Source: Cyanophora paradoxa CCMP329
Lineage: Eukaryota > Plantae > Glaucophyta
Assembly: GCA_004431415.1 (NCBI GenBank)
Contig: QPMI01000099.1
Location: 1 to 64,000, forward strand
DNA: 64,000 bases
Direction: 5' to 3'
Part shown: piece by piece, positions 1 to 30,167 of the stretch
Layout: every line of letters starts with the position of its first letter
Position numbering within the stretch: position 1 is the stretch's first letter
Position numbers and translations under genes: made by a program
Notes under the pieces: model-generated
What the model saw: only the letters and a program-made list of their open reading frames with translations
Told to the model about the DNA's origin: nothing
Databases searched by the model: none

Positions 1-31
1 CGCAACCCCCTGCGTCAGCGAGTCACATCAG

Positions 32-3000
32 CTGGTCGCCGTTCTTCGCATAGACGGAACCCAGAGCGGAGGCAGCTTCAAATTCGCGATCACGTACCAA
101 AGCGTTCCCGCCTCGAGTGAGTCTCCAGTCACAAATGATCAATATTGCTTGCAACGGCCAGATCACGGTTGACCTCGAGCTCGCGATTGACTTGCGCAGA
201 CACGTCGTCCCCTCGCATGAGGCAACTGTATCCTTATTATGAAGACACGTACCGCGGGTATCAGGCGTACGTAAACAGCAATTACTACACACTAACGGTG
301 ATGACGATGAGTTCGTCAAACGACAATTTCATTTCTAATTTTGACTTCGTAGGACGACGACGATGAGTTCCGAAAGTGCATTCTGAAGATGGGCTACAAC
401 CTTCCCACTTACTTCGGAACTTATGATGGGACGACGGATTCGCCGCCTACTGCAGCTCAACACACAACAAACCCTCATTATTGGAGGTCAGGCGACACAT
501 ATCCGCACGAACGCGCAACGTAGTGCGTCAGCTGTCAATTTCGGTGTAATGTAAATCACAACCTCAAGCTTAAGCATAAGCGTGGCCGCAGCATCATAAA
601 GAGCTGCGATCAGATGAGCCGCCTGGAAATCATCTTAGACGGCCTGGCTGGGGAAAAGTACCATGGTAAGATTATCCAGCCTATAGGCCTAATCATCAGA
701 TCATGAGCTTGCGTGTGTCGCGCGCCTCGTTCAACGCCTAATCATTTGCATCTTTCTCAACATGCAGACACGCTTGCGGTGAGTACACGGACGCGCTTCG
801 AATTCAATGAATATTAATGCTTCATGATCATGATCGCCCGTTCCTCAGTTCTACGAGGTTTTCATCAACGGATCCGTCCGGGCGATCTCGATCTCATCGG
901 GAGTTTACAAACCCACCAACGACGTTCAGGATTACCCCGCTAACGAGCTCATCAACCCCCCGGTGACAGCGTTCAACACCTCCGAGGGAGTCTCGACCGT
1001 CTGGGTGCTCATGGGAGGCGACCTCACGCGGTTCTACAAGGGTTTCACAATTCGCGCGAGGGCTCTGGGCGCGGGTGCGGAGATTCGAAGCTATCGCGAT
1101 GAGAGCGACGCGCAGTCCTGAAGATTGTCGCTGATCTTCTGTTAACACAGATTGTCCTACGATTCCGAGGGAGCCGTACTTCAACTGCAACGCTTCACTG
1201 GCACGCACGGGAAAGCAGGCGGCGCCAATTTTCGGATGGTTACCCGGCACTAAACCACGTGCGCCCTACAGATTTTAAAACGCTCGATTCTGCTCGTCTT
1301 ACTTTTTTCCCGCGTAGCTCCGAAGCTCGCAATTACCGCGGTCGGAGCAACGTCCCTCACTGAGGTCGTTCAACTGCCTTTTTAGTCGTTTACGCTCAAG
1401 TCCAGTTATGGTGATTGACGTCCGGTCCCGCACGGTTGTCGCATGCGCAGCCTCAGAAGACCACGTACGCCGCGAGCCCGGACAACAAGATTGCGCTCAC
1501 CACTCCGGCGTTTATTTCTGTGAAGGTGATCCTAATTATGTCGAAGCTCAATCACGGCATTGTGGCTGACTAAACAATTCGTAGTCGGGCGGTGAGGTCT
1601 TCACAATCAGCGGGACCGGTTTCCCCGCTGGCAAGCCGATCAAGATCCAAATCGTTAATCAGACGGGGTCGGTGGACGCTATCAACCCGCAGATCGTCTC
1701 GACTACCTCTATTACCTTCAGTGCGCCATCCGACTTTTACGTATATATACCTTTCGCTCGGCGCTTCCCTCCGTAATTAATGCTCGCGATTTTCTTCGGC
1801 AAACAGCTGCCCCGGCGTTTCCCGATGCACAAAGCCCGCCCTTCCGTTTGAACTTCTGGAACGATCTGGTCGGCACAGTTTCGAATCTCGCTTACATCAC
1901 ATTTCGAATATCGATATCGTATCCTTCGCGCAGAACATCACCTCTCCCCAACGCGATTTTCAGTTTGCACACCTCGCGAACGTGCGCATTTCTAGCTACA
2001 GAGTTAAGCTTCCGCTTACTACACTGACTTTGGATCCGGTGATACGCTGATGTACGCAGGCGCACATGTGGGTCGCCAACGGCCCCGACATCACTGTGGT
2101 AGGAGCGACTCCCGTCCCAGAGGGAATCAAGTCTCCGGGGCTGGTCGCTTTCCCGGCTTCATCGCCTCCCAATCCGGCACTCGTCTCAGTAAAGGTGATA
2201 ACATCGAACTTTATGTCCAATTGCAATGTCCGATCGTCCTCGTGATCATCCATGATTAGGCGGGAGGCGAGCTTTTCACTATACAAGGGCTGAGGTTCCC
2301 TGTCGGCAAGCCCATCAAGATCTGGCTCGTGAAGGACACCGGCAAGCTCGCGACAATCGATCCCAAGGTCGTCGACGATAAGACCATTACGTTCTGTGCG
2401 TGAATCTGTCGAGACCGCATCGCAAGCGTACGTGTCCGCGGCAGCTGACGCCGTCCTGCGTCCTTGCAGCGGCGCCGGAGTTCCCGGCGACGACCCAGAG
2501 CCCTCCGTTCCTGCTGGACATCCTCAACGACCTGCTCCTGGAGAGCGCGGACTCGCCCGCAGCCTTCGACCCGATCACGATCAAGAACGTGAGAAACTTG
2601 AGCGGCTGTTTCCCAATTCTTGAACATGAGTTCAGCATTCAAGACTTCTCTATGAATTATTGCGCTGTGGCTCGATGAATATCAATTCATCAAAGAAACC
2701 ACGCGAAACCGTTTAATTTGCTTCGCAGGCGCACATCTGGACTGGCAAGTTCACCATTAGCACCGTCGGCTCAACGACCGTGCCAGATACCGTCAAGTCT
2801 CCGGGGCTAATTAATTTCCCGGCAACCACGCCTCCCAAGCCGGCTCTCGTCTCGGCCAAGGTCAGCATCATTCAAATACCGCCCGGGAAACTCTCGCAGA
2901 AGCTTCCGATGTCTGATTCGCCTCTAGCCCGGCGGCGAAGTGTTCTCCATCGCGGGTGTCAACTTCCCTGCCGGCAAGCCTATCAGGATCTGGCTCGTGA

Positions 3001-6000
3001 AGGACACCGGGAAGCTCGCGACTATCAACCCGAAGGTGGTGGACGCCAAGACAATTACGTTCAGTGCGTGAATGCGGCGAAGTCGCCTTCTCAAGCGCAC
3101 GTGCCCCCGGCAGCTGACGCCGTCCTGCGTCCTTGCAGCGGCGCCGGAGTTCCCGGCGACGACCCAGAGCCCGCCGTTCCTGCTGGACATCCTGAATGAC
3201 CTGCTCTTGGAGAGCGCGAGCTCCCCCGCAGACTTCGAACCCACCACGATCAAGAACGTGAGATACTCGAAAATTATTTCCTTCTCCATCAACCTTCAGT
3301 TAGAATAATTCCTCTCTAAACTAATGAACTGCATGTTTAGTAATCAGAATTCATGAGACAATGTTGTGAAACGGTCTGTGTCGCAGGCGCACATCTGGAC
3401 TAGCAAGGTCATCATTAGCAGCGTCGGCTCTACAACCGTGCCAGATAACATCAAGACTCCCGGGCTAATTGATTTCCCGGTAACTTCTCCTCCCAGTCCG
3501 GCTCTCGTCTCGGCCAAGGTCAGAATCATTCATATACTGTCCTGTCGCCGAAACTTACAATATCTGATCCGCGTTTAGCCTGGCGGTGAACTGTTCTCGA
3601 TCGCGGGTGTCAACTTCCCTGCCGGCAAGCCCATCAAGATTTGGCTCGTGAAGGACACGGGCAAGGTGGAGACCATTGATCCCAAGGTCGTCGATGACAA
3701 GACCATTACATTTAGTGCGCTCTATGTGTTTTGAACGCCTCTATTATGCGAAATGTGCTGTCAGTGATTGATTCGCACGCGCACGTGGATGTACGTTCGG
3801 CTGACACTTTCCGCGATCCCGTGCTTTTGCAGAGGCGCCGCCGTTCCCGGATGCGCAAAGCCCTCCGTTCCTGCTGGACATCCTCAACGACCTGCTCCTG
3901 GAGAGCGCGAGCTCTCCCGCAGACTTCGAGCCGACTACGATCAAGAACGTGCGAAACTCGAAAACCATTTATAATGTGGACACCACACACGCATTCATGC
4001 CTTCTTTCTAGTCAACGTTCTGAAGCTTAATGGATTATACTTATAATTACAGTTCATTAAGCAGACCATGTGAAACGGTTTGTGTCGCAGGCACACATCT
4101 GGACCAGCAAGCTCGGCATCATCGCCGTCGGCCCTACGATCGTGCCAGATGCCATCAAGTCTCCGGGACTGATCGATTTTCCGGCGACCTCGCCTCCCAA
4201 TCCGGCGCTCGTCTCGGCCAAGGTCTGCATCATTCAAATACCCTCCTTGTGTTGAAGCTTCCGATCTCTGATTATCCTATAGCCTGGCGGTGAACTGTTC
4301 TCTATCACGGGTGCCAACTTCCCTGCCGGCAAGCCCATCAAGATCTGGCTCGTGAAGGACACCGGCAAGCTCGCGACAATCGATCCTAAGATCTTCAACG
4401 ATAAGACCATCACGTTCAGTGCGTGAATCTTCCGTGTTCGGCATCGCGAGCGCGCGTGTCCGCGGCAGCTGACGCCGTCCTGCGTCCTTGCAGCGGCGCC
4501 GGAGTTCCCGGCGACGACCCAGAGCCCTCCGTTCCTGCTGGACATCCTCAACGACCTGCTCCTGGAGAGCGCGGACTTCCCCGCAGCCTTCGACCCCTTC
4601 ACGATCAAGAACGTGAGAACCTCGAACTCTTAAGAGCTGTTTCCCAGTTTATAAACATAAGTTCAGCGTTTATGACTTCTCGAGCTCCATAAATGATTGC
4701 GCTGTGCCTCGATGAATATCAAGTCATCAAAGAATCCACGCGAAACCGTTAGCTTCGCAGGCGCATATGTGGACTAGCAAGGAGAGGCTGGGGGGGGTAC
4801 GGAAAATTTACGGTAGCGCGACGATTACGGCGGCGCAGCGGGCCAGGTTTCCCACCCGTGGGTTCCTGATAACGCTGCGTGTCAAGCTGCTCGGAAAGTC
4901 GCGCGCCAGCTCCACCCGACCCCCGTAGCCAGAACGCGCTAGATAGACCAGCCGGGCGTGCACGGACAGCCGACACGAGCACATCATCACCAATCGCAAC
5001 CGCCGAAGTCGGTAGCCCGCCCCCGGAGCGCCAGGCAGCCCCGCCAACCTCGCCGCGTCATCTTTTTTGAATTCCACGGACCCCCGGACCCCACCTGCGC
5101 CCTGCGCGGAGCGCAAAGCAATCGCCCTGCCTCTCCCGATAGACGATAAGAGCTCTTAAGCAACTGAACTGCCGCCCAGTCCCCGCGCATTGCGCCCCGA
5201 TGCTGACACTCACTCACTGCCTGTCACACCGCAGACATGAGCCGATCATCCACGGACGACACACCGGATGTCGCCGCCATGCCCGGCGAACGACGTAGAC
5301 CGTGCTTGCGCGACGCTCGCCGGCGCCCAGGCCCCGCGGGCCCACGCCCCCCCCCCCTTTCCCCGGACTGGGCCCAAAGGGCGCCCACCTGGACTCCTCC
5401 CCCCCGAGGCCGGTACAGAAGCGTGTACGCTCGGACCCCCTGCCCCCCGTCCGCAGTCCGAGCCAGACGAGGCCCGCCCGGACCCGGCCTTCAAGCCGGC
5501 CCCTGCCCTCCCGCTTCAGCGCCCCGCCCCGCCCTCCGGCTCCAGCGCCCCGCCCCCGCCCTCCGGCTCCAGCGCCCCGCCCCGCCCTCCGGCTCCAGCG
5601 CCCCGCCCCCGCCCCCCAGCTCCAGCGCCCCGCCCCGCCCCCCAGCTCCAGCGCCCGCCCCCGCCCCCAGCTCCAGCGCCCCGCCCCGCCCTCCGGCTCC
5701 AGCGCCCCGCCCCCGCCCCCAGCTCCAGCGCCCCGCCCCGCCCCCCAGCTCCAGCGCCCCGCCCCGCCCTCCGGCTCCAGCGCCCGCCCCGCCCTCCGGC
5801 TCCAGCGCCCGCCCCCGCCCTCCGGCTCCAGCGCCCCGCCCCGCCCTCCGGCTCCAGCGCCCCGCCCCGCCCTCCGGCTCCAGCGCCCCGCCCCGCCCCC
5901 AGCTCCAGCGCCCCGCCCCCGCCCCCAGCTCCAGCGCCCCGCCCCGCCCTCCGGCTCCAGCGCCCCGCCCCGCCTCCGCTCCAGCGCCCCGCCCCCGCCC

Positions 6001-9000
6001 CCAGCTCCAGCGCCCCGCCCCCGCCCCCCAGCTCCAGCGCCCCGCCCCGCCCTCCGGCTCCAGCGCCCCGCCCCGCCCCCCAGCTCCAGCACCCCGCCCC
6101 CGCCCCCAGCTCCAGCGCCCCGCCCCGCCCTCCGGCTCCAGCGCCCCGCCCCCGCCCCCCAGCTCCAGCGCCCCGCCCCCGCCCTCCGGCTCCAGCGCCC
6201 CGCCCCCGCCACCCCTCTAAGTGCCCCGCCGCCCTAGCGCCCCGCCGCTCCCTCGCGCCCTTCCCCCGTCGCCCCCAGCGCCCCGCCGCCCCCCAGTGCC
6301 CTTCCACGTCACCCCTCTCAGCGCCCCGCCGCCCTAGTGCCCGCTGCTCCCCGTGCCCTTCCCCGTCGCCCCGGCGCCCCTCCGCCCCCAGCGCCCTTCC
6401 GCCGCCGCTTCCCCAGGGCCCCGCCCCAGTGCTCCTCCACCCCTTAGCCCCCGCCCTTTGCCCCGGCCCCCAGCGCCCCGCCCCCGCCGCCCCCAGCGCC
6501 CCGCCCCCGCCGCCCTCTAGCGCCCTGCCCCGACCCTCGGCGCCCCGCCCCGCTCCCGGCCCGTCACCCTCCCGCCCGCCCCGCCCCGCCCGCCCCCAGC
6601 TCCCCGACCCCAGCGCCTCACCCCGCCACCCTCCAGCGCTCCGTGTACCCCACTCCCTGCCCTTCTCCCCCTCCCTACGCCTCGCCCCCCGCCGACCCCC
6701 AGCACCCCGTGCGCCTCGCCTCCCCCCTCCCCCCCTCTCTTCCACAGGGCCAAGGACACCAACGCATCAGGCCCTCCTAAAGCTGTAGATCGATAGCTCA
6801 CAGCTAGGATAAGATAGCAGGACGTCTTCCTTCTATGCCGCAGAGCATTTGCGCTAGCCTAGGCGCCCCCCCGGTCGACGTCACCGACGGGGCGGCGGTT
6901 GTTGTCCTTAATACGAACATTGCCCGGTTGGGCTTTTGCAAAAAAAAATGTGGACTAGCAAGATCGCAATCACCGCCGTCGGCTCGACGGGCGTGCCGGC
7001 TCCCACAAGATCTCCGGGGATAGTCGATTTCCCGGCAACCTTGCCTCCCAGTCCGGCTCTCGTCTCGGCCAAGGTCAGAATCATTCATAAACTTTCCTTT
7101 CATCGAAACATTCAATCTCTGATCCCCGTTTAGCCCGGCGGGGAACTGTTCTCTATCACGGGTGTCAACTTCCCTGTCGGCAAGCCCATCAAACTCTGGC
7201 TCGTGAAGGACACCGGCAAGCTCGAGACCATCAACCCTAAGATCTTCAACGATAAGACCATCACGTTCAGTGCGTGATTCTTTCGTGTTCGGCATCTTGA
7301 GCGTACGTGTCCGTGGCAGCTGACGCCGTCCTGTGTGCTTGCAGCGGCACCGGAATTCCCGGCGACGACCCAGAGCCCGCCGTTCCTGCTGGACATCCTC
7401 AACGACCTGCTCCTGGAGAGCGCGGACTCGCCCGCAGCCTTCGATCCGATCACGATCAAGAACGTGAGAAACTTAAAGAGCTGTTTCCCAGTTTATAAAC
7501 ATGTTTCAGCATTCAAGACTTCAAAGAATTTCGATTAATTACAAACCCCACGCAAACCGTTTGTCTCGCAGGCGCATATCTGGACAAGCAAGGTTGCCAT
7601 CACCGCCGTCGGCCCGACGGGCGTGCCAGATACCATCAAGTCGCCCGGGCGCATTACATTCCCGGCAACCGCGCCTCCTAATCCGGCGCTCGTCTCGGCC
7701 AAGGTCTGCTTCATTCCAATACTGTCGTTTTCATTTTCATGAAGCTTCCGATCTCTGATTATCCTATAGCCTGGCGGTGAATTGTTCTCTATCACGGGTG
7801 TCAACTTCCCTGCCGGCAAGCCCATCAAACTCTGGCTCGTGAAGGACACCGGCAAGCTTGAGACTATCAATCCTAAGATCTTCAACGATAAGACCATCAC
7901 GTTCAGTGCGTGAATCTGTCAAGTATCTCCAGCATGCGTGTCCGTGGCATCTGACGCCGTCATGTGTCCTTGCAGCGGCACCGGAGTTCCCGGAGAAGAC
8001 CCAGAGCCCTCCGTTCAAGCTGGACATCCTCAACGACCTGCTCCTGGAGAGCGCGGACTCGCCCGCAGCCTTCGACCCGATCACGATCAAGAACGTGAGA
8101 AATTCTAAACCCGCTTCCCGATTCATAAACATAACTTTAGCATTCGAGACGGGTGTATAGATTTATGCATTGTAGCTTGAGAAGTAGGAATCGTGGAAGA
8201 AAGTACGCGAACCCGTTTGTTTCGCAGGCGCACATCTGGACTAGCAAGGTCGCCATCACCGCCGTCGGCTCGACGGGCGTGCCAGCGACCATCAAGTCGC
8301 CCGAGCGCATTACGTTCCCGGCAACCTCGCCTCCCAATCCGGCGCTCGTCTCGGCCAAGGTCAGCACCATTTGAATACCGTCCGGGGTCCTTTAGGTGGA
8401 GCTTCTGAGTCTGATTCGCCTCTAGCCCGGCGGTGAACTGTTCTCTATCACGGGTGTCAACTTCCCTGTCGGCAAGCCCATCAAACTCTGGCTCGTGAAG
8501 GACACCGGCAAGCTCGAGACCATCGATCCTAAGATCTTCAACGATAAGACCATCACGTTCAGTGCGCGAATCTGTCAAGTTCTGCATCTCGAGCGTACGT
8601 GTCCGTGGCAGCTGACGCCGTCCTGTGTCCTTGCAGCGGCGCCGGAGTTCCCGGAGAAGACCCAGAGCCCTCCGTTCCTGCTGGACATCCTCAACGACCT
8701 GCTCCTGGAGAGCGCGGACTCCCCCGCAGCCTTCGAGCCGATCACGATCAAGAACGTGAGAAATTCTAGATCCGCGAATCTAGCATTCAAGATGGGTTTA
8801 AAGATGAATGCACTGTTGCTTGATTAAGAAGGAATCGGAAACGAGCCCACGCGAACCCGTTCTTTTGCAGGCGCACATCTGGACTAGCAAGGTCGCCATC
8901 ACCGCCGTCGGCTCGACGGGCGTGCCAGCGACCGTCAAGTCTCCCGAGCGCATTACGTTCCCGGCAACCGCGCCTCCCAATCCGGCGCTCGTCTCGGCCA

Positions 9001-12000
9001 AGGTCAGCATCATTCAAATACCTCCCGGGAAACTCTCGCAGAAACTTCCGATGTCTGATTCGAATTCGCCTCTAGCCCGGCGGCGAATTGTTCTCTATCA
9101 CGGGTGTCAACTTCCCTGTCGGCAAGCCCATCAAACTCTGGCTCGTGAAGGACACCGGCAAGCTCGAGACCATCAACCCTAAGATCTTCAACGATAAGAC
9201 CATCACGTTCAGTGCGTGAATCTGTCAAGTATCTCCAGCGTACGTGTCCGCGGCAGCTGACGCCGTCCTGTGTCCTTGCAGCGGCCCCGGATTTCCCGGC
9301 GACGACCCAGAGCCCGCCGTTCCTGCTGGACATCCTCAACGACCTGCTCCTGGAGAGCGCGGACTCCCCCGCAGCCTTCGACCCGATCACGATCAAGAAT
9401 GTGAGAAATTCTAGATCCGCGAATCTAGCATTCAAGACGGGTTTAAAGATAAATGCACTGTAGCTGGATCGATGAGGAATCTTGATCGAAACAACGCGAA
9501 CCCGTTTCCTTCGCAGGCGCACATCTGGACTAGCAAGGTCGCCATCACCGCCGTCGGCTCGACGGGCGTGCCGGCTTCGATCAAGTCGCCCGAGCGCATT
9601 ACGTTCCCGGCAACCGCGCCTCCCAATCCGGCGCTCGTCTCGGCCAAGGTCAGCACCATTCAAATACCGTCCGGGGTCCTTTCGCTGGAGCTTCTGAGTC
9701 TGATTCGCCTCTAGCCCGGCGGTGAACTGTTCTCTATCACGGGTGTCAACTTCCCTGTCGGCAAGCCCATCAAACTCTGGCTCGTGAAGGACACCGGCAA
9801 GCTCGAGACCATCAATCCTATAATCTTCAACGATAAGACCATCACGTTCAGTGCGTGAATCTGTCAAGTATCTCCAGCGTACGTGTCCGCGGCAGCTGAC
9901 GCCGTCCTGCGTCCTTGCAGCGGCGCCGGAGTTCCCGGCAACGACCCAGAGCCCGCCGTTCCTGCTGGACATCCTCAACGACCTGCTCCTGGAGAGCGCG
10001 GACTCCCCCGCAGCCTTCGAGCCGATCACGATCAAGAACGTGAGAAATTCTAGATCCGCGAATTTAGCATTCAAGACGGGTTTAAAGATTTATGCACTGT
10101 AGCTTGATCAAGAAGGATTCGGAAACGAACCCACGCGAACCCTTTCTTTCGCAGGCGCATGTGTGGACAAGCAAGATCGCCATCACCGCCGTCGGCTCGA
10201 CGGGCGTGCCGGCTTCGATCAAGTCGCCCGAGCGTATTACGTTCCCGGCAACCGCGCCTCCCAATCCGGCGCTCGTCTCGGCCAAGGTCTGCATCGCTCC
10301 AAAGCCCGTCCTTTCGTTGAAGTTGTTGATCACTGTTTCGCTTTTAGCCCGGCGGTGAAGTGTTTTCCATCGCGGGTGTCAACTTCCCTGTCGGCAAGCC
10401 CATCAAGGTCTGGATCGTGAAGGACACGGGCAAGGTGGAAGCGATCGAGCCGAAGGTCGTGGACGCAAAGACCATCACGTTCAGTGCGTTCTATGCTTTC
10501 GATAGCCGCTCATGTGCACCATGCACTATCAGTGATTGTTCGCACGTGGATGCGTTTGCGCGGCTGACGCTTTTCGGGATTTGGTGTGTTCACAGAGGCG
10601 CCGCCGTTCCCGGATGCGCAAAGCCCTCCGTTCCTGCTGGACATCCTCAACGACCTGCTTCTGGAGAGCGCGGACTCCCCCGCAGCCTTCGAGCCGATCA
10701 CGATCAAGAACGTGAGAAATTCTAGATCCGCGAATCTAGCATTCAAGACGGGTTTAAAGATTAATGCACTGTATATATATACGTAGCCTGATCAAGAAGG
10801 AATCGGAAACGAGCCCACGCGAACCCTTTCTTTCGCAGGCGCATGTGTGGACAAGCAAGATCGCCATCACCGCCGTCGGCTCGACGGGCGTGCCAGCGAC
10901 CATCAAGTCGCCCGAGCGCATCACGTTCCCGGCAACCGCGCCTCCCAATCCGGCGCTCGTCTCGGCCAAGGTCTGCATCATTCAAATACCGTCTTGGCTC
11001 CTTTCGCTGAAGCCTCCTTTCTCTGATTCGCTTTTAGGCTGGCGGTGAATTGTTCTCTATCACGGGTGTCAACTTCCCTGTCGGCAAGCCCATCAAGGTC
11101 TGGATCGTGAAGGACACGGGCAAGGTGGAAGCGATCGAGCCGAAGGTCGTGGACGCAAAGACCATCACGTTCAGTGCGTTCTATGCTTTCGATAGCCGCT
11201 CATGTGCACCATGCACTATCAGTGATTGTTCGCACGTGGATGCGTTTGCGCGGCTGACACTTGTTGGGATTTGGTGCGTTCACAGAGGCGCCGCCGTTCC
11301 CGGATGCGCAAAGCCCTCCGTTCCTGCTGGACATCCTCAACGACCTGCTCCTGGAGAGCGCGGACTCCCCCGCAGCCTTCGAACCTATCACGATCAAGAA
11401 CGTGCGCAATTGAGAACTCGGGTCAATTCAAACTCTTCGCCAATCTGACCGAAACGCGGCACATGTTCTGCAGGCGCATGTGTGGCAGAGCAAGCTGCCT
11501 CTGAATCTCGTGCAAGTAGGAGAGGAAGGCGTTCCGGACTCGCTCAAGTCGGGACCGTACGTTAATCTGCCGGAGGCCTCTCTCTATTCCCTCAAGGTGC
11601 GCACCGCGCTTTCAAATACTGAGAAAATCCGTTGCGTTTCATTCTCTGACAATCTGCAACAGGCCGGTGGCGAGTCTTTCACCATCAAAGGTGTCGGCTT
11701 CCCGGTTGGAGAGCCCATCAGGATCTGGATCGTGAAGGAGGCCGGAAAAGTCGAGACCATCAACCCGAAGATTGTCGACGCCAAGACGATTACGTTCAGT
11801 GCGTCGCTCGCGGCTGCATTAATTTCGGTCGCACCGCCGAAAACTGATATTCGACCCGTCGTGCCTTGTTAGCTGCGCCGCCGTTCCCGGATGCGCAGAG
11901 CCCTCCGTTCCAGCTGGATATCCTCAACGACCTGATCCTCGAGAGCGCGAACACGCCCGCGAATTTCCTCCCTACGACGATCAAGAATGTGAGAAATCAT

Positions 12001-15000
12001 TCCTCGTCGTATCGTCATCACGTCCTCGACGAGGCCCAAATCGCTCACAAATAATTGCATTAAACGAGTGCAGGCTCACGTCTGGTTTACGCCGAAGCCC
12101 CTCAACATCGTGAAGGTACGTTTGAAATTTCCAATAAATCGCACTTGAACTTCGCTCACGAGATTTCGCTGTCGTCGCGCAGGTCGGTCCCAAGGACGTG
12201 CTGGAGTCGCAGAAGGACTTGCCCGCGGGCAAGATCACGCTGCCCGACACTGCTCCTGACGCGGCGCTCATCTCGGGTCGGGTGCGTCGAAATGCCATAA
12301 GGCTCCGAGGTTGTCTTTTGATTATGCGGATGTTAGGCCGGCGGAGAGACTTTCCAGCTGGAGGGCAAGAGCTTCCCTACCGGCGTCCCGATCACCGTCA
12401 CGATTGTGAAGGACACGGGCAAGGTGGCCGCCATCGACCCGAAGATAGTGTCGTCTCGAGTCATCACGTTCCGTGCGCGCGCGCTTTGGTTGCGATCGTC
12501 CCCAGGCTCTAGCTGGAGGCCATTTGTTCACACTCGTTTTCCCGATCGCGTCGTTCAGGGGCGCCGCCGTTCCCCTCGGACAAGAGCCCGCCCTTCCAGA
12601 TCAATGTCCTGAACGACCTTCTCCTCGAGTCGACCTCGGGAGGCTTCGTGACGACGACGATCTTCAAGGTTCGTCGGATTCGACCCCGCGATCAATCTCT
12701 CTGTCGTATCCGCCACACGATGTAAACGCCATGCATGTGGTACGCAGGCGCACGTGTGGAAGGCTCTGCCTCGGCTCAACATTACGCGCGCTGCGAACAT
12801 GACCTACACTCGTGACGCGGAGCCGAGCGCTGACAAGATGACCGGATCGGTCGTCGCCAACGGGAAGAGGCAGATCGCACCGCACATGAGGACCGAGGCC
12901 ACCGACGACAAGATCACCGTTCAGCCCGCCTTCCTTTCCCGTCGCGTGAGCATCAAATTTGCACCCTTTTGTGTTCAGATGTTTGTGGTTCATCTTACGC
13001 TGTCTTTGCCAGGACGGCGGCGAGAGCTTCACGGTGTTCGGGTCAGACCTACCCGCGGGCAAGAACGTTCGCGTCACCCTCATCAAGGAGACGGACGGGA
13101 AAACTGGGCGTCTCGACGTCTTGGACCCGAAGATCAGCAGCAGCACGCAGATCACTTTCCGTGCGTTCTGTCAATGCGATCGACTCCGTTTTGGTCTGTC
13201 GTGATCATATGCGACGCGCGCATATACTTGTGCAGGCGCTCCTGCCTTCCCGGATGTCCAGAGCCCTCCTTTCTTGATGGACAAGTGGAATGATCTCCTC
13301 ATGTGCACTCTTTCTGTTAAAAGTTTCCTGCATGTGCTCGCTGACTCGGTCTTGGATCAGCTGGTCTGCTGATGGCGAGTTCGAAGCTTCCACACTGAAG
13401 AACGTGCGTCCTTGCTTAAATTTAGCTAATTCGCCGTATACTCAAATGGTCGCACGCGTGCAGGCGCACATGTGGAAGACCGACGTGCGCTCTAAGCTTT
13501 CTCGCAACACAGCGTTCTAAACGCACCTTAATTGTGGGTGTTCAGAAAATCACGAAGGGCATGAAATTCACGAGGATTGTTGGAAACAACGGTTCGGAAG
13601 TCATCAACGATACGGCCTCGGGCTCCACTCCGGTGCGTGCACTTATTTGAAGGCTTTAGCAAGTGAATATTGCAATGTGCCTCTTTTTACTTTTACTAAC
13701 ACGCGTACGGCACGCAGGTTTACAGGATCGTGTACAACCCTGACGGCTCGGCTGTAAGCGTCATCCCCCCCCCCCCCCCCCCCCCCCTCTTTCGTCCGCT
13801 CCGCGCCTCATTCTTATCTTTTCTTATCTTCCCCCCGCCCCCCCTTCGTCCTCCTCCCGCAGGATCTGTTCTTCCCGCGGCCGTTCCTCATCTCGCCCTT
13901 CGTCCGCCCTGCATCCGCGCTCGTCGCACAAATGTCTTCGTGTGTTATCTGACAGTGATTGTGATCGTAACTTGCAGGGCGGAGGCGACGTCTACACGAT
14001 CAACGGCGAGAACTTCCCCGTCGGCGAGCCCATCAACGTTGTGCGTAATTATTCGCAAACGTCGCTGTGGCCCACCCCTTTGATTCACGATGACGTGGGA
14101 CCGCAGAAAATCATCCGGGACGGACAGGAGATCGATGCGCTGAAGGCGGACTTTGTGACCAGTACCACGCTCGTCTTCAGTGAGTATCTTTGCGTCGTGT
14201 ATAATTTGTATCTTCGTGCGCCTTCCGTAACGGACGCTGATTGTGATGCAATAAACAGCGGCACCCACATTCCCCGGGCGCCGTCCCTTCCGCGGGCGGA
14301 AGCTTGTCCAGCAACTGCTGACCAACTTCGAGTGCGCGCCTTTACGAGAATCGTTCTGCTCGCTTTCGCGAGCCCTCTCGCGCAGGCTGAACAAGCCCAA
14401 CGACGTCCGCGTGACCTCCACCGCCGACCCGCCCGCGTTCGACCCTGTCACCTTCAAGGACGTGCGTGATATAAACACTGCGCATTAGCGTGATGCTCTT
14501 TCTCTTCTTATTGTTTGTTGTTCTTGCGCGTAGACTTTCGTGTGGCTCCCGATCAACCCGTCCTTCGTGAGCCCCAACATCCCCGTTTCCGGCCTCGACC
14601 CCAACAACGGCGGCTCGGGCGACCCCGACTCTGGGAAGCCGCGGAACGTGCGCTCTTTTCTCTAGATTTGCTCTTCTATGCTCGTCGTGTCTAGAATCCG
14701 GGTCTGACTTCGAATTCTCGCATTTTCGTCTCCAGCTTGGTGTTATCCTCGGCACCGTCATCCCCATCGGACTCGTGGCCCTCGCCGCTGCGGGCCTCGC
14801 GGTCGCCAAGGCGAACGGGGCGCTCTCCGGCCTCGGCGCCGGCCTCTTCGGCCCGTCGGCGGGGACGGCGTACACAACCACTGCCGCCCCCGCGGCCGGC
14901 GCGGGCGCCGGCGCCCAAGGCTACGCGGGCGCGCAGGGCGGCTACGGCGCCGCTACGGGCTACCCCGGCGCTGGCGCCGGAGCTGGGCCTGGGTACGGCG

Positions 15001-16838
15001 GCCCCGGGGCTGGTGCGGGCGGCGCAGGAGGCGCGGGCGGCGCGGGCGCTGGAGCTGGCGCCCCGGCCCCGAGCCCCCTCGCTCCCTCGAGCCTGCAGCT
15101 CAGCAGCGTGTCTGCCGCCGGCAGCGGCTCCGCGACCCTTTCCTGGAGCCCGCCCGCCGCCGGCGCCCCGGCGAGCTACCAGATCATGCAGAACGGCGTG
15201 GCCGTGGGATCCGTCCCTGGCTTCCAGGCATCGGCGCCCATCTCGGGCCTCGCGGCGAACAGCCCCGCCGTCCTGCAGGTCGTCCCCGTCGACGCCTCCG
15301 GCGTGGCCGGCCCGCCGTCGTACCCGATGTCCGCCGTTGTCGGCTCGCCCTCCGGTTTCGGCGGCGGCGCCCCCGTGCTCACTGCCGCTCCGGCGGCGGC
15401 CAACGGCTCGAGCGCCGTTCTGAACTGGACCGCCGCTTCTGCCGCCGCCGCTGCCGCTGGCTCTGGGTGCGCACAACGTCTTTCTCGGCACACCGCGACA
15501 GACAACAGTCTAGATATGCAGAGTATTTTCACGCTCTGACCTTCGCCCGCAGGTTCGCCGTCCTCGCGAACGGGCGCCAGATTGGCACGGCGCCGGCCTC
15601 GCCTTCGGGCGCCGGCTCGTTCGTGGCGAAGGGCCTCCCGACCAGCGGGCCGGTCGCCCTTTCCGTCGGGCCGCTCTCGCCCTCCGCTGCGGCTGCCGGC
15701 GCCGCGCCGTCGGTCGCCGCGCCTCTCGCGGTGTACGGCGCTTCTTCGGGCGCGGCCGGCGCCTCGGCGGCCGCCCTCGCCCCTAGCGGTCTCCAGCTGA
15801 CCAACGTCTCCTCGGGCATGTTCGGCGGCACGTCGGGCACGCTCTCGTGGAGCCGCCCGCAGGCGGGCGCCCCCGCCGCCTTCCAGGTCCTCAGGAACGG
15901 CCAGGTCTCGGCGTCGGTGCCGGGCGGCCAGACCTCCATCGACGTCTCCAGCCTGCCCAAGGACGGCACTGCCGTCTTCCAAGTGGCGCCCGTCGACGAG
16001 AACGGCGCCGTCGGCCCGGCCTCGCCGCCGCTTGCCGCCGGCATCCCGTCCTCCAGCGGCGGCGTCAACCTCGCCGTCACTTCGTCCGCCTCCGGCACCG
16101 AGGCCGCGCTCGCGTGGACCGCGGCCGCTTCGGCGTCCGTCGCCGGGTCCGCGATATATTCTCAGAATCTAATCTCCAGAAACTCGCCTTCTCGCCTGCT
16201 CGCCTCTCACCGAGAGCAACGCAGGTTCGCCGTGCTGGTCAACGGCAACAAGACCGCCACCGTGCCGGCCGGCTACGGCGGCTCGAACTACACCTTCGCC
16301 GCCCGCGGCCTCAACCCGAACGCCGCCTCCTACTTCAAGGTCGTCCCCGTCTCCGCCGACGGCGCGGTGGCCGGCGAGGCGAGCAAGGACGTCCCGGCCC
16401 TCCGCTACGGCGGCGGCGCCGGCGCGCGCGGCGACAGCGGCGCGCCCCGCAACCTGCGCGTGCGGGAGGGCCGCTCCGGCGAGCTCGCCCTGTCGTGGGA
16501 CCACCCCGAGACCTACAGGCGGACGCCCGTCGCCCAGTACGAGGCGAGCCGCCGTCTCCCGCCTCCTTCGCTGGAGTCTTTCGAATCGAGCGGCCGCTGA
16601 TTATAACGGTTCGCAGGTGTGGGCTGCTGTCGGGGCGTACTCGGCGCCCTCGGTCCTCCTCGCGACAGTCCCCGGGGACGCGCACTCGTACGCGCTGCCC
16701 GCGGGCGCGGTGGCCTCGGCCAGCGGCCTCATCGTCCGCGCCGTCTCGCGCGGCTCCGGCCTCTCCGCCGACAGCGCCCCGTTCCCGATCGGCCCGGCTC
16801 TCTCCGAAGCCTCTCTTGTGCACTCGGTGCAACTCTAA
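32..16838 (+). CDS. Giant multi-exon single-pass membrane protein, paralog 1 (5' partial): ~16 IPT/TIG-like repeats, TM helix, Gly-rich linker, ~5 FN3-like repeats; one exon interrupted by a retroposon
   Basis: Phase-consistent exons run from the window start (LVAVLRIDGTQSGGSFKFAITY...) through repeated cassettes: A (AHIWTSKVAITAVG...PALVSAK), B (PGGELFSITGVNFPVGKPIK...KTITF), C (TAAPEFP...QSPPFLLDILNDLLLES...TIKN). GG..F.I.G.NF ... IT...P resembles the IPT/TIG signature. The TM segment LGVILGTVIPIGLVALAAAGLAVA starts at 14736. FN3-like motifs include AP..L.....ATLSW.PP...Y.I..NG...GL....V.PV. The stop is TAA at 16836-16838 after ...HSVQL. Confidence 0.85.
4782..6948 (+). mobile_element. Non-autonomous non-LTR retroposon (SINE/SVA-like composite), ~2.17 kb, with poly(A) tail and 14-15 bp TSD
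   Basis: The direct repeat (a)tgtggactagcaag occurs at 4767/8-4781 and 6948/9-6962, with an A9 tail at 6940-6948 immediately before the second copy. Removing the insert restores the exon AHMWTSK|IAITAVG seen in sibling repeats. No RT or endonuclease ORF is present. Confidence 0.9.
5515..6210 (+). repeat. GC-rich minisatellite (VNTR) inside the retroposon, ~22-27 bp unit containing GCTCCAGCGCCCCGCCCCGCCC; degenerate C-rich tail to ~6740
   Basis: The ctccagcgcccc core recurs about 25-30 times, alternating ccggctcc and ccagctcc variants. Confidence 0.92.
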
Positions 16839-23841: not shown

Positions 23842-24704
23842 CGCGGGTCGCCGAGTCGGACCAGCACGATCGAAGCCGTGCAGCTGCAGCGGGTCCCGAG
23901 GTTTGCGTGCCTCGGAGGGGCTTGCCCGCCCGCTCAGCCGATCGACGCCGCCCTTACCGACGTACCCCTATTGCGGGAGCTCAATTCCTCAATTTCCGGA
24001 TCCGCCGCCGGGCCGCTCAGTGCGGCGGCCGCCCGCGTGCGGCCGACCTGGTCCGCCCACTGGCCCGGCGGCACCCAGTTGCGGCTACTAGGCTAGCACT
24101 CTCTAGATCTGAGGTTAGGACTCCTCAGGGCCTCTTTCGATCGGCCCTCTACAAGAACTAGTACTCCTATCGTGATCATGATCATAAGATTCATAAATAA
24201 CTCTTTGACATCGACGTCTAGATCTGGCGCGCCCGCCCGGGAGAGGCCTCGAGCTCGGCCGCGGGCGAGCTCTCGCTCTCGAGGCCCGTCCCATGCAGGG
24301 ACCGAATTCTCAACGAGCGAAACCGTGATTTTAATATGTATGATATGACCATGAAGCCTGAGTGTACACTAAGAAGACGCCGGCAAGAAATACGAACGCG
24401 CCGCTGTACCCTAAAATAACACCGACAAGCTAAGCTGCAAGCAAGCCCGGGGGCGGCGCCCAGGAAAAGCGGGCGACGCCCTAAGACGCGGCTGGAGCAA
24501 TAAGAAACACTACGAAGAAAGGAAACTCGAAATGCATGGCAAGATATACGTATACAGGCGCCCGCCCGGGGTCGGGACGCAGGAGAAAGCCCGGCTCTCT
24601 ATCTGACTCCGCCGGGGCGGGCCTCTACGGGGCGAGGCAGCCGAGGAAGCCGAAGCACCCGAGGAGGCCGCCGCCCAGGCCGCCCAGGCCGCTCAGGTGA
24701 GGGC

Positions 24705-26372
24705 TCAGATGGTGAGGGAGTCGTCGAGGCGGGCGAGGCCGAGGGCGCGGTTCGCGGCGTCGAGGGGGGCCCCGGCCGCCACCCCAAAATCCACCCCCCC
24801 GCCCCCCGCCGAGCACCTGCGGGGGGGGCGCAGGCGAGTCAGACGGGTCAGATGAGTCGCGCCCGGAACAGCGTGATGCTATGATCTCGGCTTGTTGGAT
24901 CTCTTCTACGCCTTCGAAGCGAATCAAAGGCCGCGCACCACGCGTCAGCCAAAGCGGCGTCGAAGGCGGCGGCGGGCGGCGGGGGCGCCTTGCCCCCCGC
25001 GGCGCCCTTGCCCCCCGCGCCCTCCTCGTCGCGGGCGAGGGGCGCGGGGACGAAGAGGGAGCGGTCCGAGTGGCCGTGCTCCGAGGGCGAGAGGCCCCGC
25101 AGGCCCCGCATGCACAGCACCTGCGGGGGGCGAGGCGGGCGGTCAGATCCAGAGAGGAGGCTAGAGCTGGAGGGGAGGGGAGGGGGAGGGGCGGGGGAGA
25201 GGCCGGGCCAGAGCTAGCACCCCGAGGCCTAGACTAGGGCGCGGGATGGAGAGCAGTCAGAGAGGCGGGGAGGAAAAGGCAGGCGGCGCCGTCATGGGCA
25301 CTAGAGCCCGGGCCCGAGCTAGATGAGAGGAGGCGAGGAGGCCGGGCGCTCAAGGCTCGGCGAAACGCGAAGGCTCGACTACCAGGGTACTTGTTAGCCC
25401 CTTCTCAGCTCGCTTCGTTCGCACCTGTGACACGTTCGGCCGCCGCTTCGGCTCCGGCTCCAGGCACGCCCGCACGACTGCGCAGGGGGGTACGTGAGCT
25501 CGGGGGGGGGGGTACCGGGGGGAAGGAGGCAGGGGTACGCACTCGCGCGGGCGTCCGGGCTGACGCCCTGCGGCCAGGCGCCGACGTCGCCCTTGGACAG
25601 CCGAACCTGCGGGGCGCGTCGGGGGGACGAGGGTTACACGGTGGCGGGTGGGGCGGGGGGGGGGGGGGGGTACGGCCGCACGAGGTTCAGGGTACCGTCC
25701 GCGTCGATGAACGGGTGCCTCCCCGTGAGGAGCCTGCGGGGGTACGGCGCGGTGGTCGGGACGGGAGGGGGCGGAGGGCGGGCGGGGCGGGGGTTACGCC
25801 GCTGCGCACATGTACAGGATGAGCCCGCAGGCCCAGACGTCGGCCCCGGGGCCGTATGCGTGCCCGATCATCAGCTCGGGCGAGAAGAACGCCGGCTGGT
25901 CGGGTACGTGAATAGAGGATCGGGGGGTACGGGAGGGGAAGGGGAGGGGGTTACCGCGATGGAGGATCCGGCGCCTGTGCAGGTGCTCCACGGACACGCA
26001 GATCTGGGAAGGCGGGGGTATCGGAAAGGGGGAGCGCGGGGGGTAGAGTGACGTGTGTGTGTGTGGGGGGGGGGGGACCTGGCTCATGTACCCCAGGGCC
26101 GTCGCCTCGGGTACGGGCCCCTTGTCAACCAGCGACTGCAGGTCCCCCCCGCTGCACCGGGTAGTCAGGGGAAGGGGGGGAGGAAGCCCGAAGGGGGTAC
26201 GCGCCTGCAGAGCTCCATGAGAATCGAGTACGTGCTCCCGTTCCGCTCCACTGCGGCGAAAGGCGGTCGGGAGCCGTTCCTTCGAGACGAGGGGGGTACG
26301 CGAGCGAGCAGGGGGGTACCGTGGTAGACGCCGCCGACGCCCTTGTGGCTGACGCTGCCCAGGATCGCGCAT
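24705..26372 (-). pseudogene. Truncated NEK-like kinase pseudogene, copy 1
   Basis: Homologous to the kinase exons at 36610-38382. It lacks the Gly-loop and ALK exons, and the whole DLKPAN...DFG...CGT exon is deleted: the HR exon (phase 1) is followed directly by the PAFFSPE exon (phase 0). Confidence 0.85.
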
Positions 26373-26935
26373 CTGCCCAGCCCGGCGATCAGAACAGAAC
26401 AGATCAAAGACGCCGGCGAGCGGGACGCCGGGCGGGAGCTCGAGGCTGTGGGCTCTAAGCTGTCAGCGGTTAGAAGCTGCAAGCTCTGCGAGCAGTCAGA
26501 ACAGAATAAGCCGAGGAGCCAACGGGCAGGCTTATGTTCAAGAGTCTCCAAGCTCCGGTCGACTGGCTGACGCAACGAGCCAGCTTGGCCAAGGCCGACG
26601 AGCAAGGCCGAGATCACGATTAGCGCCAACACCCACCACGGCCGCCGCTCAACCGCTGCAATCGCCCGCGACCGCAATGGCACGACCGCGGCCTGCAGCG
26701 CAGGCGCGCCAGCTGCGCCGCTCATCGAGCGGGGCGGAGGACTGCAGTAGCGGACGGAGAACTGCAGTATGCGCGCGCGAACTGCCATTTCCAGCCAGCA
26801 TTTGCGGCCTAGAGGCGAGTGGCGATTTGACAGCGTACCCGGTGAGCGAAGCAGCCCTTCGCAGGGCAAGATTGCCAAGCGAACGTGCCGCGAGCGCCGC
26901 TGCCCGAGTCGAAGCTTCAGCGATTGCCCGCGTCG

Positions 26936-29900
26936 ATGGCAGCCGCTTCAGCACCCTGTGCCCGAGCCTTCGCGGACCACGAGAGCGTTCTTTTGAGGAC
27001 CGACGCCGGCCGCGGAGCAGAGGCGCTCCAAAAAAGCCTGTACGATTCGCAAAATGCTCTCGTGTTCGTCAAGGCCGCCCCCGCTTCCCCCAGCGCATCT
27101 ATTGATCACGATCAATTTAATACGATCCGCACGCGCGCTCCGCAGGACGAAACGATCGTCATCTGCGGCGGAGAGGACTGCTTCCTTTACGTTTACGAAA
27201 GGCAAACCCGCCACGGCGCCAACGTGTACGACCTGCTGTGGAGGGACGAGTACCACGCCAAGGAAGACGCGGACAACTCAGATACGCGACTTTTCGGCTC
27301 CAGCCTCTACTGTGCTGCGATGACCAGGGTCCGTTGAGCGAACGCTGACACGAGACGGCCGACGCTGACACGCGGCCACGCGTACGCGTACGGCTGCGCG
27401 CTGTGCACGCAGGACACAATGCGCCGCCACAAGATGCAGAACGGCCAGGCTGGCTTTCTTGTCGTCACAGGGGGCGGCGATGCGATGGTCGCCATCTGGC
27501 TCGTCGTGCCGGGCCGGACAGAAGGCGTGCGGCTTCAGACATACTGCCACGGCAAGTCCGTGCACGGCGTCGACATCACCCTTGTGAGCGTCTTAATGGA
27601 AGCTTTTTCCACCTTTCGCTCATGCCGCGCCCAGGACGGACGGACGATCGCTTCGGGCAGCGATGACGGGACGATCCGCATCTACCTCCTTGGCCAGGAC
27701 AGGGAGTATCAGCCGCACATCTGCCTTGGCGAGCGTCCGCCGCAGCCTGACGTTCTCTGGAAGTCGGCTTCGACCGATATCGATAAATTCCCGTTCAAGC
27801 CTGGGCACAACATCGGGTCCGTCAAGGCAACCGCGCTGTCTTCGGTGCGCATTCGAGATCGAGTTTTGCATTGCCAGTGCTAGCTATAGTGCACGTGGCC
27901 GCGACGCCGCGACAAATCTCAGCTTACATACGCCGTCTGCAGCGCGGCTCGGTTCTGGTGTCTTCCCACTACTCGGAGAGCAAGCCGGGGAGCTTCACCT
28001 TCACGAGCTGCGTGCGCCTCTGGCGTCTACATCAGGGCAGCGCGTTCAAGATCTGTGAGATCTCCGACCGAGACCCACTTCAAACAAGTGGGGACCCCTA
28101 CAATTGGGGCGACGTCCTCCCTGTCGCGATAGCAGAGGTGCCCATTTGCTCTTAACAATATCTAATTATCCTCGTATCCTCTTAATCTATCGATGCAGTT
28201 GGGGGGGGAGCCCCAATACTTCGCGTTCGGCGACTCCAGCGGAGTCGTTCGCATCTACCGCATTCCGAATGTTCAGCTCGTCGGTCCCGTCCATTTGCAG
28301 CCAGTAGCGACGTATAATATTAATTGCAACGACGAAGTCCCAACGCATTCGACCCGCCACGACGTGCACAGCTCCACAAGCCCTTCCCCATCCACTCGCT
28401 CGCTTTCTTCAATGTGCGAGCGTGCTTTTCCGGGATATCGATATCGATCCGCTTATGTCGATCATGGCTTATTTTCCCACAGGGAAGTCTAGACTTCATG
28501 GCCGGCAGCGACGTAGCAACGTTGGAGGATTTGGACGAGAGCGGAATCGACGGGAAGAAAGGAAGACGTCGCTACGACGAGCAGCTCAACGTCGGTCTCA
28601 ACGGCTTCTTCGACGTCTGCAGCTTGCGGCTGCAGGGCGACGCACAACCCCAGCTGCGACGGGAGGCTCGGATTCTCTTCAAGTTCGCCAGTGGAGTCTA
28701 CTGCCTCGACCCCTCCTCCGTGCGGCCTTGTGCATCTCTGCTATCTATCTGCCTTGCTCTCTAAGCATCCTCCAGGACAACAGGAAGATCTTCGGGGGCT
28801 GCGAGGACTGCACCGTCCGCATCGTCTCCCCCAAATTAAAATCAGGGGTTCGTGTTCTTCTTCTGATTTTTTCACTGCATTTGTGATCACGAGTTTTCTG
28901 ATGCATATGGATTGGATCACAGAGCTCGAGCTCGTCTTCAAGCTCTCAGCCTCCTGTACCTCAGCAGAAGCACGATGGCGCCAAGCCTCAAGCTAGTCCA
29001 TCCTCCCAACGAGGCGGCCCGTCGGCGTCCCGGAAGCGGGCCGCCGCGGACGACGGCCTAAGCGATGAAGACCGCGAGGAGGAATCGGAGGAGCTTCGGA
29101 CCCAGCGCCGCCGGAAAGCGCCTGCAGCTGAACATGTGCCTCGGGGGCCGCGACAGCCTTCGGCCGCTGCCTCTCCTCCGGCGATTGCGCCCCCTCTGCC
29201 AGCTGCGGCGGGCCCCGCAGCAGCGGCCGAGCCAGTGGCGCCAGCGGAGGCCGCCGGTGCAGAATCGGCCATGGGCGACGGGCAGCTGCAGCAGGTGGCG
29301 GCCGCAGGCGAGGCAGCAGCGGACCCCGAGCCCACGGTGGATGGAGCCGTGCAAGCGCTGCAGCGCGCCTTGACGCACCAGCTCGAGCGGCGACTGCGCG
29401 AGGAGCAGCAGCGCCAGCTCGAGGAGCAGGAGCGGCGACTGCGCGAGCAGCACAAGCGCCAGCTCGAGGAGCAGCAACGGCGGCTGCGCGAGGAGCACGG
29501 GCGGGAGGCGGAGGCGGCACTCGCAGAGGCGGCTTCGGTGCAGGCTCGGCTCACGGCGGCCGAGGCGGCGGCGGAGGAGCGGGCGGCGGCGGCGGGGGCA
29601 GCCGAGGCGCGGGCCGCCCAGCTTCATACCGCCCTCGACGAGGTGCATCCCCGGACCCGTCGCTTCTTTCCGCACCCGTTTTGAGCCTCACCGTCTTTGC
29701 GACTGCAGGTGCGCCCGGAGGCTGCTCTGGTGGAGCCCCTGCGGGGGGGGCTCGAGGTGGCGGCGCTGCGGGCGCGGGTGGCGGAGCTGGAGGGGCGACT
29801 GGCGGGGAGCGTGCCAGTGGCGCCGGCGGACCTCGCGGGGCTCACAGTGGAGCAGCTTCTCGACGTGCAGCGGCGGCTCGCCCAGGGCTCGGCCGCCCTC

Positions 29901-30167
29901 TCGAGCGCCCTCAACGCTGCGCTGCAGCGGCGGGGGTCCGGCCACCTGGACACGCAGTGCATGAAATGCACGGAGCGCCCGCGGTCAGTCCTGCTGCAGC
30001 CCTGCCGCCACATCGTACTCTGCGAGGGCTGCTACGACGCGGTGCTCGCGGCGGCCCACCCCCAGCCGCAGCAGGCGGGCCCCTCCGAGCCGCGTCCCGC
30101 CCTTTGCCCCAAATGCCGCCTGCCTTTCGACGAGGGCGCCACCGTCCGCGGGGTGTTCCTCCCCTAG
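26936..30167 (+). CDS. WD40-repeat / coiled-coil / C-terminal RING-HC protein (putative E3 ligase), copy 1
   Basis: WD-type blades: IVICGGEDCFLYVY, LVVTGGGDAMVAIW, HGKSVHGVDITLDGRTIASGSDDGTIRIY, FAFGDSSGVVRIY, DNRKIFGGCEDCTVRI. A basic RKR...RRRK segment and an (LREEQQRQLEEQ)n coiled coil follow, then C..C..RPRSVLLQPCRH..LC..C...CP.CR. There is an apparent 1-bp frameshift at ~28340 relative to copy 2. Confidence 0.82.

Follow-up and report, generated by a model that had tools for sequence, protein, structure and literature searches.

Two tail-to-tail genes of Cyanophora paradoxa predicted to encode long IPT/TIG arrays under concerted evolution

Arthropod Dscam1, whose Ig-fold ectodomain lies on repeated exons, possesses clusters of mutually exclusive exons and many isoforms, and in integrin beta-4 a single helix leads to several FN3 domains on the cytoplasmic side, a possible cytoskeleton anchor. 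In plexins, MET/RON and fibrocystin-like proteins (PF01833), a tandem IPT stalk stands above one transmembrane helix. Dictyostelium Tgr proteins are likewise transmembrane proteins with IPT/TIG repeats, which mediate allorecognition; the family is large and polymorphic between strains, its locus undergoes duplication and recombination, and a ligand-receptor pair has been shown (PMC12745789). [quoted passage not shown] Finally, homogenised mosaic units, block duplication and copy-number change are features of fungal adhesins, Podospora hnwd (PMC2873952) and spidroins (PMC9779670).

The window, i.e. the whole stretch of 64,000 nucleotides of C. paradoxa DNA analysed here, holds two paralogous genes arranged tail-to-tail (gene 1, 1-16838, forward strand; gene 2, reverse strand; table 1). 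Both follow the same plan, in which a tandem array of units of approximately 129 amino acids leads to one predicted transmembrane helix and then to five FN3-like modules. A preliminary description had delimited gene 1 as 32-16838: a TAA stop codon stands at 16836-16838, but position 32 does not stand as a start, no start codon or signal peptide being placeable within the window, and the gene may begin before position 1. Exons of the 5' region were without match in Pfam and Atlas, exon 849-1073 yielding no usable Atlas match. The public model tig00000396_g24870.t1 covers units 1-4 of gene 1 and then enters an insertion. At the other end, tail exon 16225-16543 would use a GC donor, and the module order and last exon were set by homology to P0012. 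The gene 2 model (tig00000396_g24884.t1, hereafter P0001) comprises 3,779 amino acids with 24 B-exon matches, and its A-B-C units were traced one by one from 63873 to 57000 on the reverse strand.

Table 1. Position of the features recognized in the two genes.
Feature	Position	Strand	Basis
Gene 1 5' region, unassigned N-terminal head into unit 0	32-1525	+	AG-to-GT open frames; inferred exon chain
Gene 1 head, candidate exons (examples)	32-116, 353-486, 614-665, 849-1074, 1318-1364, 1451-1525	+	
Gene 1 diverged unit 0 (exon B at 1585-1720; additional intron within exon C)	1585-1981	+	
Gene 1 units 1-4, each A-B-C	2060-4612	+	
Gene 1 unit 5 (exon A in two parts, 4761-4781 and 6963-7073)	4761-7463	+	
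Non-LTR retroposon-like insertion, 2,181 bp, splitting exon A of unit 5	4782-6962	+	
Gene 1 units 6-12, each A-B-C	7572-11988	+	Units 10-12 seen in RNA pieces and joints
Gene 1 diverged units 13-15 (extra introns) and juxtamembrane segment	12074-14647	+	RNA-contig joints
Gene 1 single predicted transmembrane helix	14736-14810	+	
Gene 1 Gly/Ala/Tyr-rich linker and five FN3-like modules	14811-16838	+	Weak Pfam fn3; homology to P0012; RNA pieces
Gene 1 tail exons	14736-15466, 15553-16146, 16225-16543, 16617-16838	+	
Gene 2, paralog, running past the window end	52343-64000	-	Public model tig00000396_g24884.t1

The 3' unique parts of the two genes share 90.3% DNA identity over 3.1 kb, and the central units number 10 in gene 1 versus 19 in gene 2, as counted in a single long-read assembly. 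Alleles or an assembly duplicate can be ruled out, because the alga is reported to be haploid (PMC6704402), the copies are inverted, 10% apart and different in one intron, and a DNA-type run of 2012 holds both gene versions (its variant letters agreeing with gene 2 at 29/30).

Within the arrays, exons strictly follow the order (A-B-C)n, with A of 132 nt (phase 0-0), B of 136 nt (0-1) and C of 119 or 116 nt (1-0), and all unit introns are GT..AG (gene 1, 2060 to 11988; gene 2, 63873 to 57000). The three-exon phase plan, previously attributed to every unit, applies to the central units, but not to the end units, which have extra introns and in some cases other phases (in gene 1, those with B exons at 1585, 12337, 13013 and 13978). 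Similarly, the motif variants quoted earlier are present, except that ‘EAPPFPDAQ’ reads KAPPFPDAQ when the split codon is translated, whereas the alternative exon types that they were taken to define are not discrete: each exon exists in 28-29 copies with 15-17 slightly differing peptides, and switches occur inside exons. Each exon A closes one domain and opens the following one, domain borders lying inside it, and one domain is spread over four exon pieces. Exchange of whole units preserves the reading frame, as would the skipping of A, of B+C or of a whole unit, whereas the loss of B alone or C alone shifts it. Phase matching had been read as a design for diversity; however, equal phases arise automatically when one unit is duplicated in tandem.

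Structural modelling identifies the folded unit as an IPT/TIG domain, i.e. an E-set Ig-like beta-sandwich, in agreement with the call first made from motif resemblance. Whole-domain searches and folding were performed on the public models P0001 and P0002. Pfam TIG matched P0001 at 1.5e-36 (124.6 bits summed; cut-off 20.9), a single stretch alone being above cut-off, and TIG clusters were among the Atlas matches. The modelled unit has a confident core at residues 7-104 (pLDDT about 80), with top structural matches to plexin A1 IPT (Z 8.8), NF-kB p52/p65 (Z 8.2-8.3) and MET (Z 8.1), and further ones to the TIG domains of EBF and CAMTA (Z 7.4-7.8). A Z near 8 is moderate by itself; what carries the assignment is how consistent the matches are, since IPT/TIG and related E-set domains make up most of the top 25 (Z 6.7-8.8, rmsd 2.1-4.0). 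Pfam searches with single exons and with the B-exon alignment gave no useful match, PDB sequence searches with two profiles gave no real match, Foldseek returned weak Ig/IPT rows only, and AlphaFold from a single sequence reached a pLDDT of 32. Pfam matches to MRP-S28 and Ydr279_N were rejected as noise summed across repeats.

The units are recombinant mosaics, and past shuffling at the DNA level is real. A PHI-like test was significant over all sites (p<=0.001), over exon sites alone, within exon A and within exon B (each p=0.0005), and within exon C (p=0.024). Clean type switches were found inside exons A and C, and gene 2 underwent a block duplication (units 2=11, 3=12, 8=16), the unit at its junction changing type within exon B. 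Together with the unequal numbers of central units, these results bear out the reshuffling and copy-number change proposed earlier, but not the exchange of exons as cassettes, since breakpoints fall inside A, B and C and domain borders inside A; located switches lay in exons in 22/41 and 10/20 cases versus 60% expected (p about 0.4). Exon A copies of gene 2 are on average 96% identical to one another, against 89% between the genes; for introns the values are 75-87% and 65-74%. Greater likeness within than between genes is clear for gene 2 and partial for gene 1. Pairwise dN/dS is 0.44, 0.23 and 0.40 for A, B and C (0.22-0.44 in every exon class and gene, roughly 0.2-0.45), a measure that is blunt on recombining repeats and can mask a few selected sites; the ratios of Dictyostelium tgrB1/C1 are likewise below 1 (PMC12745789). 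Substitutions are mostly conservative, with at most three residue types in each column of B and C, and variation is richest in the linker (19/31 variable columns versus 37/92 in the domain).

Among 1.84 billion representatives, the family amounts to these two genes and one distant model of 95 amino acids, a count in which close copies within 50% clusters could go unseen. Sequence searches detected no relatives outside C. paradoxa, and word searches with the transmembrane exon and P0001:1900-3779 found no match within their length window. Bacterial profile matches (HYR and other repeat proteins) were discarded as relatives, their weak scores being summed. These genes are not described in the literature searched.

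Gene 1 is transcribed, the splice pattern described earlier is borne out, and its 3' half is spliced colinearly: gene-1-specific RNA contigs of low depth, in which rare variants are dropped, display 12 canonical colinear joints among those listed (13 further joints lie beyond these), most of them in all three RNA-type runs and none in the DNA-type run. Eleven GT..AG joints are located between 12472 and 14386. Upstream, the insertion comes with a target-site duplication of 15 bp (copies at 4767-4781 and 6948-6962), an A9 tail and an internal 26-bp GC-rich tandem array (5499-6206). It was absent from the preliminary description.

Concerning the nature of the products, we consider a concertedly evolving stalk or tether at the cell surface to be the probable explanation. 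Both are most likely, as judged from sequence, single-pass membrane proteins of type I topology, with the IPT array outside. The helix is the sole strong hydrophobic peak of the gene 2 paralog (KD 2.37) and aligns with the helices of P0011 and P0012, and helix and FN3 tail are common to other Cyanophora giant proteins; Pfam fn3 is weak per exon, the modules being singly below cut-off, and reaches 3.8e-11 on P0001 (43.5 bits summed; cut-off 25). The reverse, type II orientation, in which the array would form a filamin-like scaffold inside the cell, with the FN3 modules facing outward, is quite unlikely. FN3 domains are usually extracellular, the array is cysteine-free and sequon-poor versus five sequons in the tail, and two basic residues precede the helix (flanking charges not being decisive); however, the diverged units near the membrane have a similar sequon density, tandem IPT arrays of membrane proteins (plexin, MET, Tgr) are normally ectodomains, and in P0012 the homologous helix and tail come after a GPS-like CxHLTxF motif, located approximately 35 residues before the helix and without Pfam match. 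In the favoured stalk or tether, a head would sit on a bead-like chain of IPT domains, 16 in the part of gene 1 within the window and about 24-25 in gene 2, joined by Pro-rich linkers of roughly 30 residues and reaching about 65-100 nm or beyond when stretched out. The five FN3-like modules inside would probably engage the cell cortex or partners in signalling. Such a protein would most likely serve as a spacer or tether keeping the head off the membrane. The array would have arisen when a single unit with three introns was duplicated in tandem. Unequal crossing-over and gene conversion, acting wherever there is homology, would then maintain it, altering stalk length and homogenizing and mixing the units while purifying selection preserves the fold.

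The same recombination could instead be exploited by a variable recognition receptor or adhesin, whose ectodomains would differ in sequence and length by strain or cell, an idea modelled on Dictyostelium Tgr proteins or brown-algal LRR-ROCO genes. Mosaic units, fast copy-number change, the frame kept by whole-unit exchange and allorecognition through Tgr IPT domains (PMC12745789) would all suit it, but the purifying dN/dS, the conservative variation concentrated in linkers, the units of gene 2 becoming more alike rather than less, and the family of two genes argue against a diversifying ectodomain, and we judge it unlikely. To the same degree we doubt that one lineage-specific anchor bears interchangeable ectodomains and an IPT stalk varying in living populations, through unequal crossing-over or unit skipping, for tunable recognition or evasion. 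Very improbable is the Dscam-style use suggested earlier, in which splicing that jumps from a unit to the corresponding exon further along would generate many isoforms. Skipping of A, B+C or entire units would stay in frame, gene 1 transcripts downstream of the insertion would need some skipping if the sampled strain has it, and one RNA contig combines segments from different units; yet this contig ends in a gene-2 exon and switches only where the sequences are identical over 32-56 nt, which in an assembly from k-mers explains its hybrid look. Moreover, the (ABC)n arrangement is not one of mutually exclusive clusters, B and C are not skippable alone, exon A bridges two domains, the listed joints are all colinear, and the RNA contigs, in which unit skipping at low frequency could escape notice, contain no transcript that is convincingly skipped or hybrid. 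There is no sign, on present evidence, of a Dscam-like or other new diversity-generating system. Another reading, possible though short of our preference, regards gene 1 as a decaying duplicate truncated by the retroposon after unit 4, the full protein coming from gene 2 only. Translation continued into the insertion would reach a stop after approximately 55 codons, and no GT donor is present at the junction, but the remaining exons are all intact and under purifying selection, and spliced gene-1-specific RNA spans the 3' half. Damage to both genes is less likely: gene 2 has 1-nt shortfalls at 62302 and 59966, but all are within C runs and absent from the block-duplicated counterpart units, as expected of long-read errors. 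Decay would bear on the state of gene 1 and can be compatible with the stalk.

A long IPT array followed by one helix and a probably cytoplasmic FN3-like tail is an architecture not found in the literature searched. The pair would enlarge the animal-like repertoire of giant surface proteins of this glaucophyte, makes its products candidates for undescribed surface or flagellar fibres, and is a clean example of intron-containing repeats in concerted evolution. Compared with plexins and MET/RON, the units are 16-25 in number, near-identical and separated by a Pro-rich linker, FN3-like modules come after the helix, and no Sema, PSI, kinase or GAP was among the Pfam matches; the likeness to integrin beta-4 is an analogy only, without integrin ectodomain, and the exon clusters of Dscam1 have no counterpart. 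Tgr proteins, a large family, differ from this pair of genes with homogenized units, to which no sequence similarity was found. [quoted passage not shown] What is observed is the likeness within genes, the recombinant units and the copy-number difference of concerted intragenic repeats, as in fungal adhesins, hnwd and spidroins, from which the locus differs in that its repeat unit contains three introns.

Two related multi-exon genes run convergently in the window; at the 3′ end, their unique parts share 90.3% identity across 3.1 kb. In both, a unit of about 129 aa recurs in strict A-B-C exon order with GT..AG introns, confirming the three-exon plan and phases of the preliminary description. 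Gene 1 displays 16 B exons in the window and the gene 2 model 24 B matches, the outer units being diverged, with additional introns. Two exonic C runs of gene 2 are 1 nt short in the window; these shortfalls are probably long-read assembly errors, and they distort the public model of this gene. One intron of gene 1, rich in pyrimidines and including a long run of C, is missing at the equivalent site of gene 2, a recent gain or loss given that the paralogs are 90% identical.

Features of the two genes and of the surrounding sequence
Feature	Position	Strand	Length	Remarks
Gene 1	before or near 1 to stop TAA 16836-16838	+
Gene 2	beyond 64000 to about 52343	-
Exon A			132 nt	phase 0-0
Exon B			136 nt	phase 0-1
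Exon C			119 or 116 nt	phase 1-0
Retroposon-like insertion	4782-6962		2,181 bp	interrupts coding exon A of gene-1 unit 5
Pyrimidine-rich intron, gene 1	13753-13862
Helix and FN3-like tail	14736-16838			common to gene 1 and giant models P0010-P0013
Probable GC-AG intron, gene 1	16544-16616
C-run shortfalls, gene 2	62302; 59966	-	1 nt each
Tandem duplication	24361-37043		about 5.9 kb	98.3% identity; partial third copy; weak WD40 and coiled-coil matches
Inorganic H+ pyrophosphatase fragment	41671-42600			Pfam 5e-24

The repeat unit is an IPT/TIG domain according to its predicted fold, as had been proposed from motif resemblance. Indeed, residues 2545-2690 of the gene 2 model (P0001), folded with an alignment of their sister units, give a beta-sandwich (pLDDT about 80 over residues 7-104, the rest at low confidence) whose best structural match is the plexin A1 IPT domain (Z 8.8), alongside the IPT/TIG domains of NF-kB, MET, EBF, NFAT and CAMTA; its Atlas matches are TIG clusters. 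In this fold, the first strand lies at the end of exon A, after a Pro-rich linker formed by the middle 30 residues of that exon, B and C form the core, and the last strand spans the junction between C and the next A. Thus, no single exon corresponds to a domain, and domain borders are not exon borders.

The paralog search suggested earlier was run with a B-exon profile against 1.84 billion representative proteins. It returned P0001 (tig00000396_g24884.t1, 3,779 aa) and P0002 (g24870.t1, part of gene 1), both from Cyanophora paradoxa, and the Cyanophora model P0007 (tig00000139_g8316.t1, 95 aa), in which this IPT subtype occurs once, as a distant version with 31% identity; the remaining matches were rejected as unrelated repeat proteins. 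Neither IPT nor fibronectin proteins are mentioned in the paper on the Cyanophora paradoxa genome (PMC6704402), and our literature search found no paper describing either gene.

The units are mosaics, and DNA-level shuffling and length change, both anticipated earlier, are borne out. After removal of the insertion from unit 5 of gene 1, the nearest-neighbour unit differs from segment to segment, and one common tree fails the incompatibility tests, within single exons too. In gene 1, unit 10 switches clearly within exons A and C, and one gene-2 unit does so within exon C. The gene 2 model also carries a duplicated block of some nine units (seen at protein level, beyond the window, in one assembly), whose junction unit changes parent in mid-exon B. 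The stretch bounded by one shared pair of anchor units holds 10 units in gene 1 against 19 in gene 2, and gene 2 units are closer to each other than to those of gene 1. Exchange of exon cassettes is not supported by these data, as breakpoints occur inside exons A, B and C, the located switches are not enriched in introns, and the domain border lies within exon A. Nor do matching phases point to a shuffling system: they are copied with the unit and are thus expected of any tandem array, whatever its purpose. The claim that any crossover or matching-exon splice stays in frame holds for homologous crossovers, which preserve frame wherever placed, in agreement with the breakpoints, and for skipping of a whole unit. 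Skipping of A or of B+C likewise keeps the frame, and skipping of B, C, A+B or C+A breaks it.

Transcription, on which the preliminary description depended, was found in three RNA-type runs from two studies, compared with one DNA-type run (low-depth contigs). Among the joints listed, beyond which there are 13 more, 12 GT..AG joints from the RNA-type runs fall exactly at predicted introns, all colinear, and these are absent from the DNA-type run. Downstream of the insertion site, gene 1 is transcribed, since RNA pieces match it without differences over exons in which the gene 2 sequence departs by 4-15 bases. This insertion is flanked by a 15-bp target-site duplication, contains a GC-rich 26-bp tandem array and has an A9 tail, with no second copy in the window. 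Translation running into it ends at a stop after about 55 codons; gene 1 may possibly be crippled in the sequenced line, a matter separate from the nature of the encoded protein.

After a single strong hydrophobic helix come a linker rich in Gly, Ala and Tyr and then five FN3-like modules. The last exon of gene 1 sits after a probable GC donor and is supported by homology to P0012, a giant Cyanophora model; the public gene 2 model lacks it and has its fifth module truncated. In four giant Cyanophora models besides the present genes, P0012 among them and the longest reaching 6,432 aa, FN3-like arrays match the tail at 39-45% identity; a similar helix precedes the array in two of the four. As IPT units of the present type are absent from all four, helix and tail appear, from sequence comparison, to be a common anchor paired with different ectodomains.

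Both proteins probably act as a stalk or tether at the cell surface, which would present a candidate head some tens of nanometres off the membrane, while the FN3-like modules would anchor or couple it inside the cell; stalk length and unit sequence would drift through unequal crossing-over and conversion. A variable recognition role could likewise draw on mosaic units; dN/dS is 0.22-0.44 throughout, with mostly conservative changes, and we regard this role as unlikely. The reversed topology, with the tail outside, seems more doubtful still: P0012 has, about 35 residues ahead of its helix, a CxHLTxF motif which we take to resemble a GPS cleavage site (Pfam does not confirm a GPS there), and this favours an N-terminal ectodomain with the FN3 tail inside.

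Diversity generated by splicing, finally, is very improbable. One RNA contig does join a C9-like exon, A11 and a B exon unique to gene 2, implying that gene 2 units are also transcribed. Every switch in it falls where the sequences agree over 32-56 nt, long enough for an assembly at k=31 to jump, and the contig was thus rejected as proof of cassette splicing. With all 12 listed joints colinear in these low-depth contigs, the unit skipping and hybrid joins envisaged earlier are not upheld; rare skipping may occur.

Compared with known systems, neither gene has the clusters of mutually exclusive exons that define Dscam, and the analogy once drawn with it is not supported. Nor does either display the defining properties of the exon-shuffled receptors of Ectocarpus (PMC3341825, PMC11378527), which they resemble only loosely, as they do the Tgr proteins (PMC12745789). 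With IPT-stalk receptors, the two proteins have both fold and plan in common.
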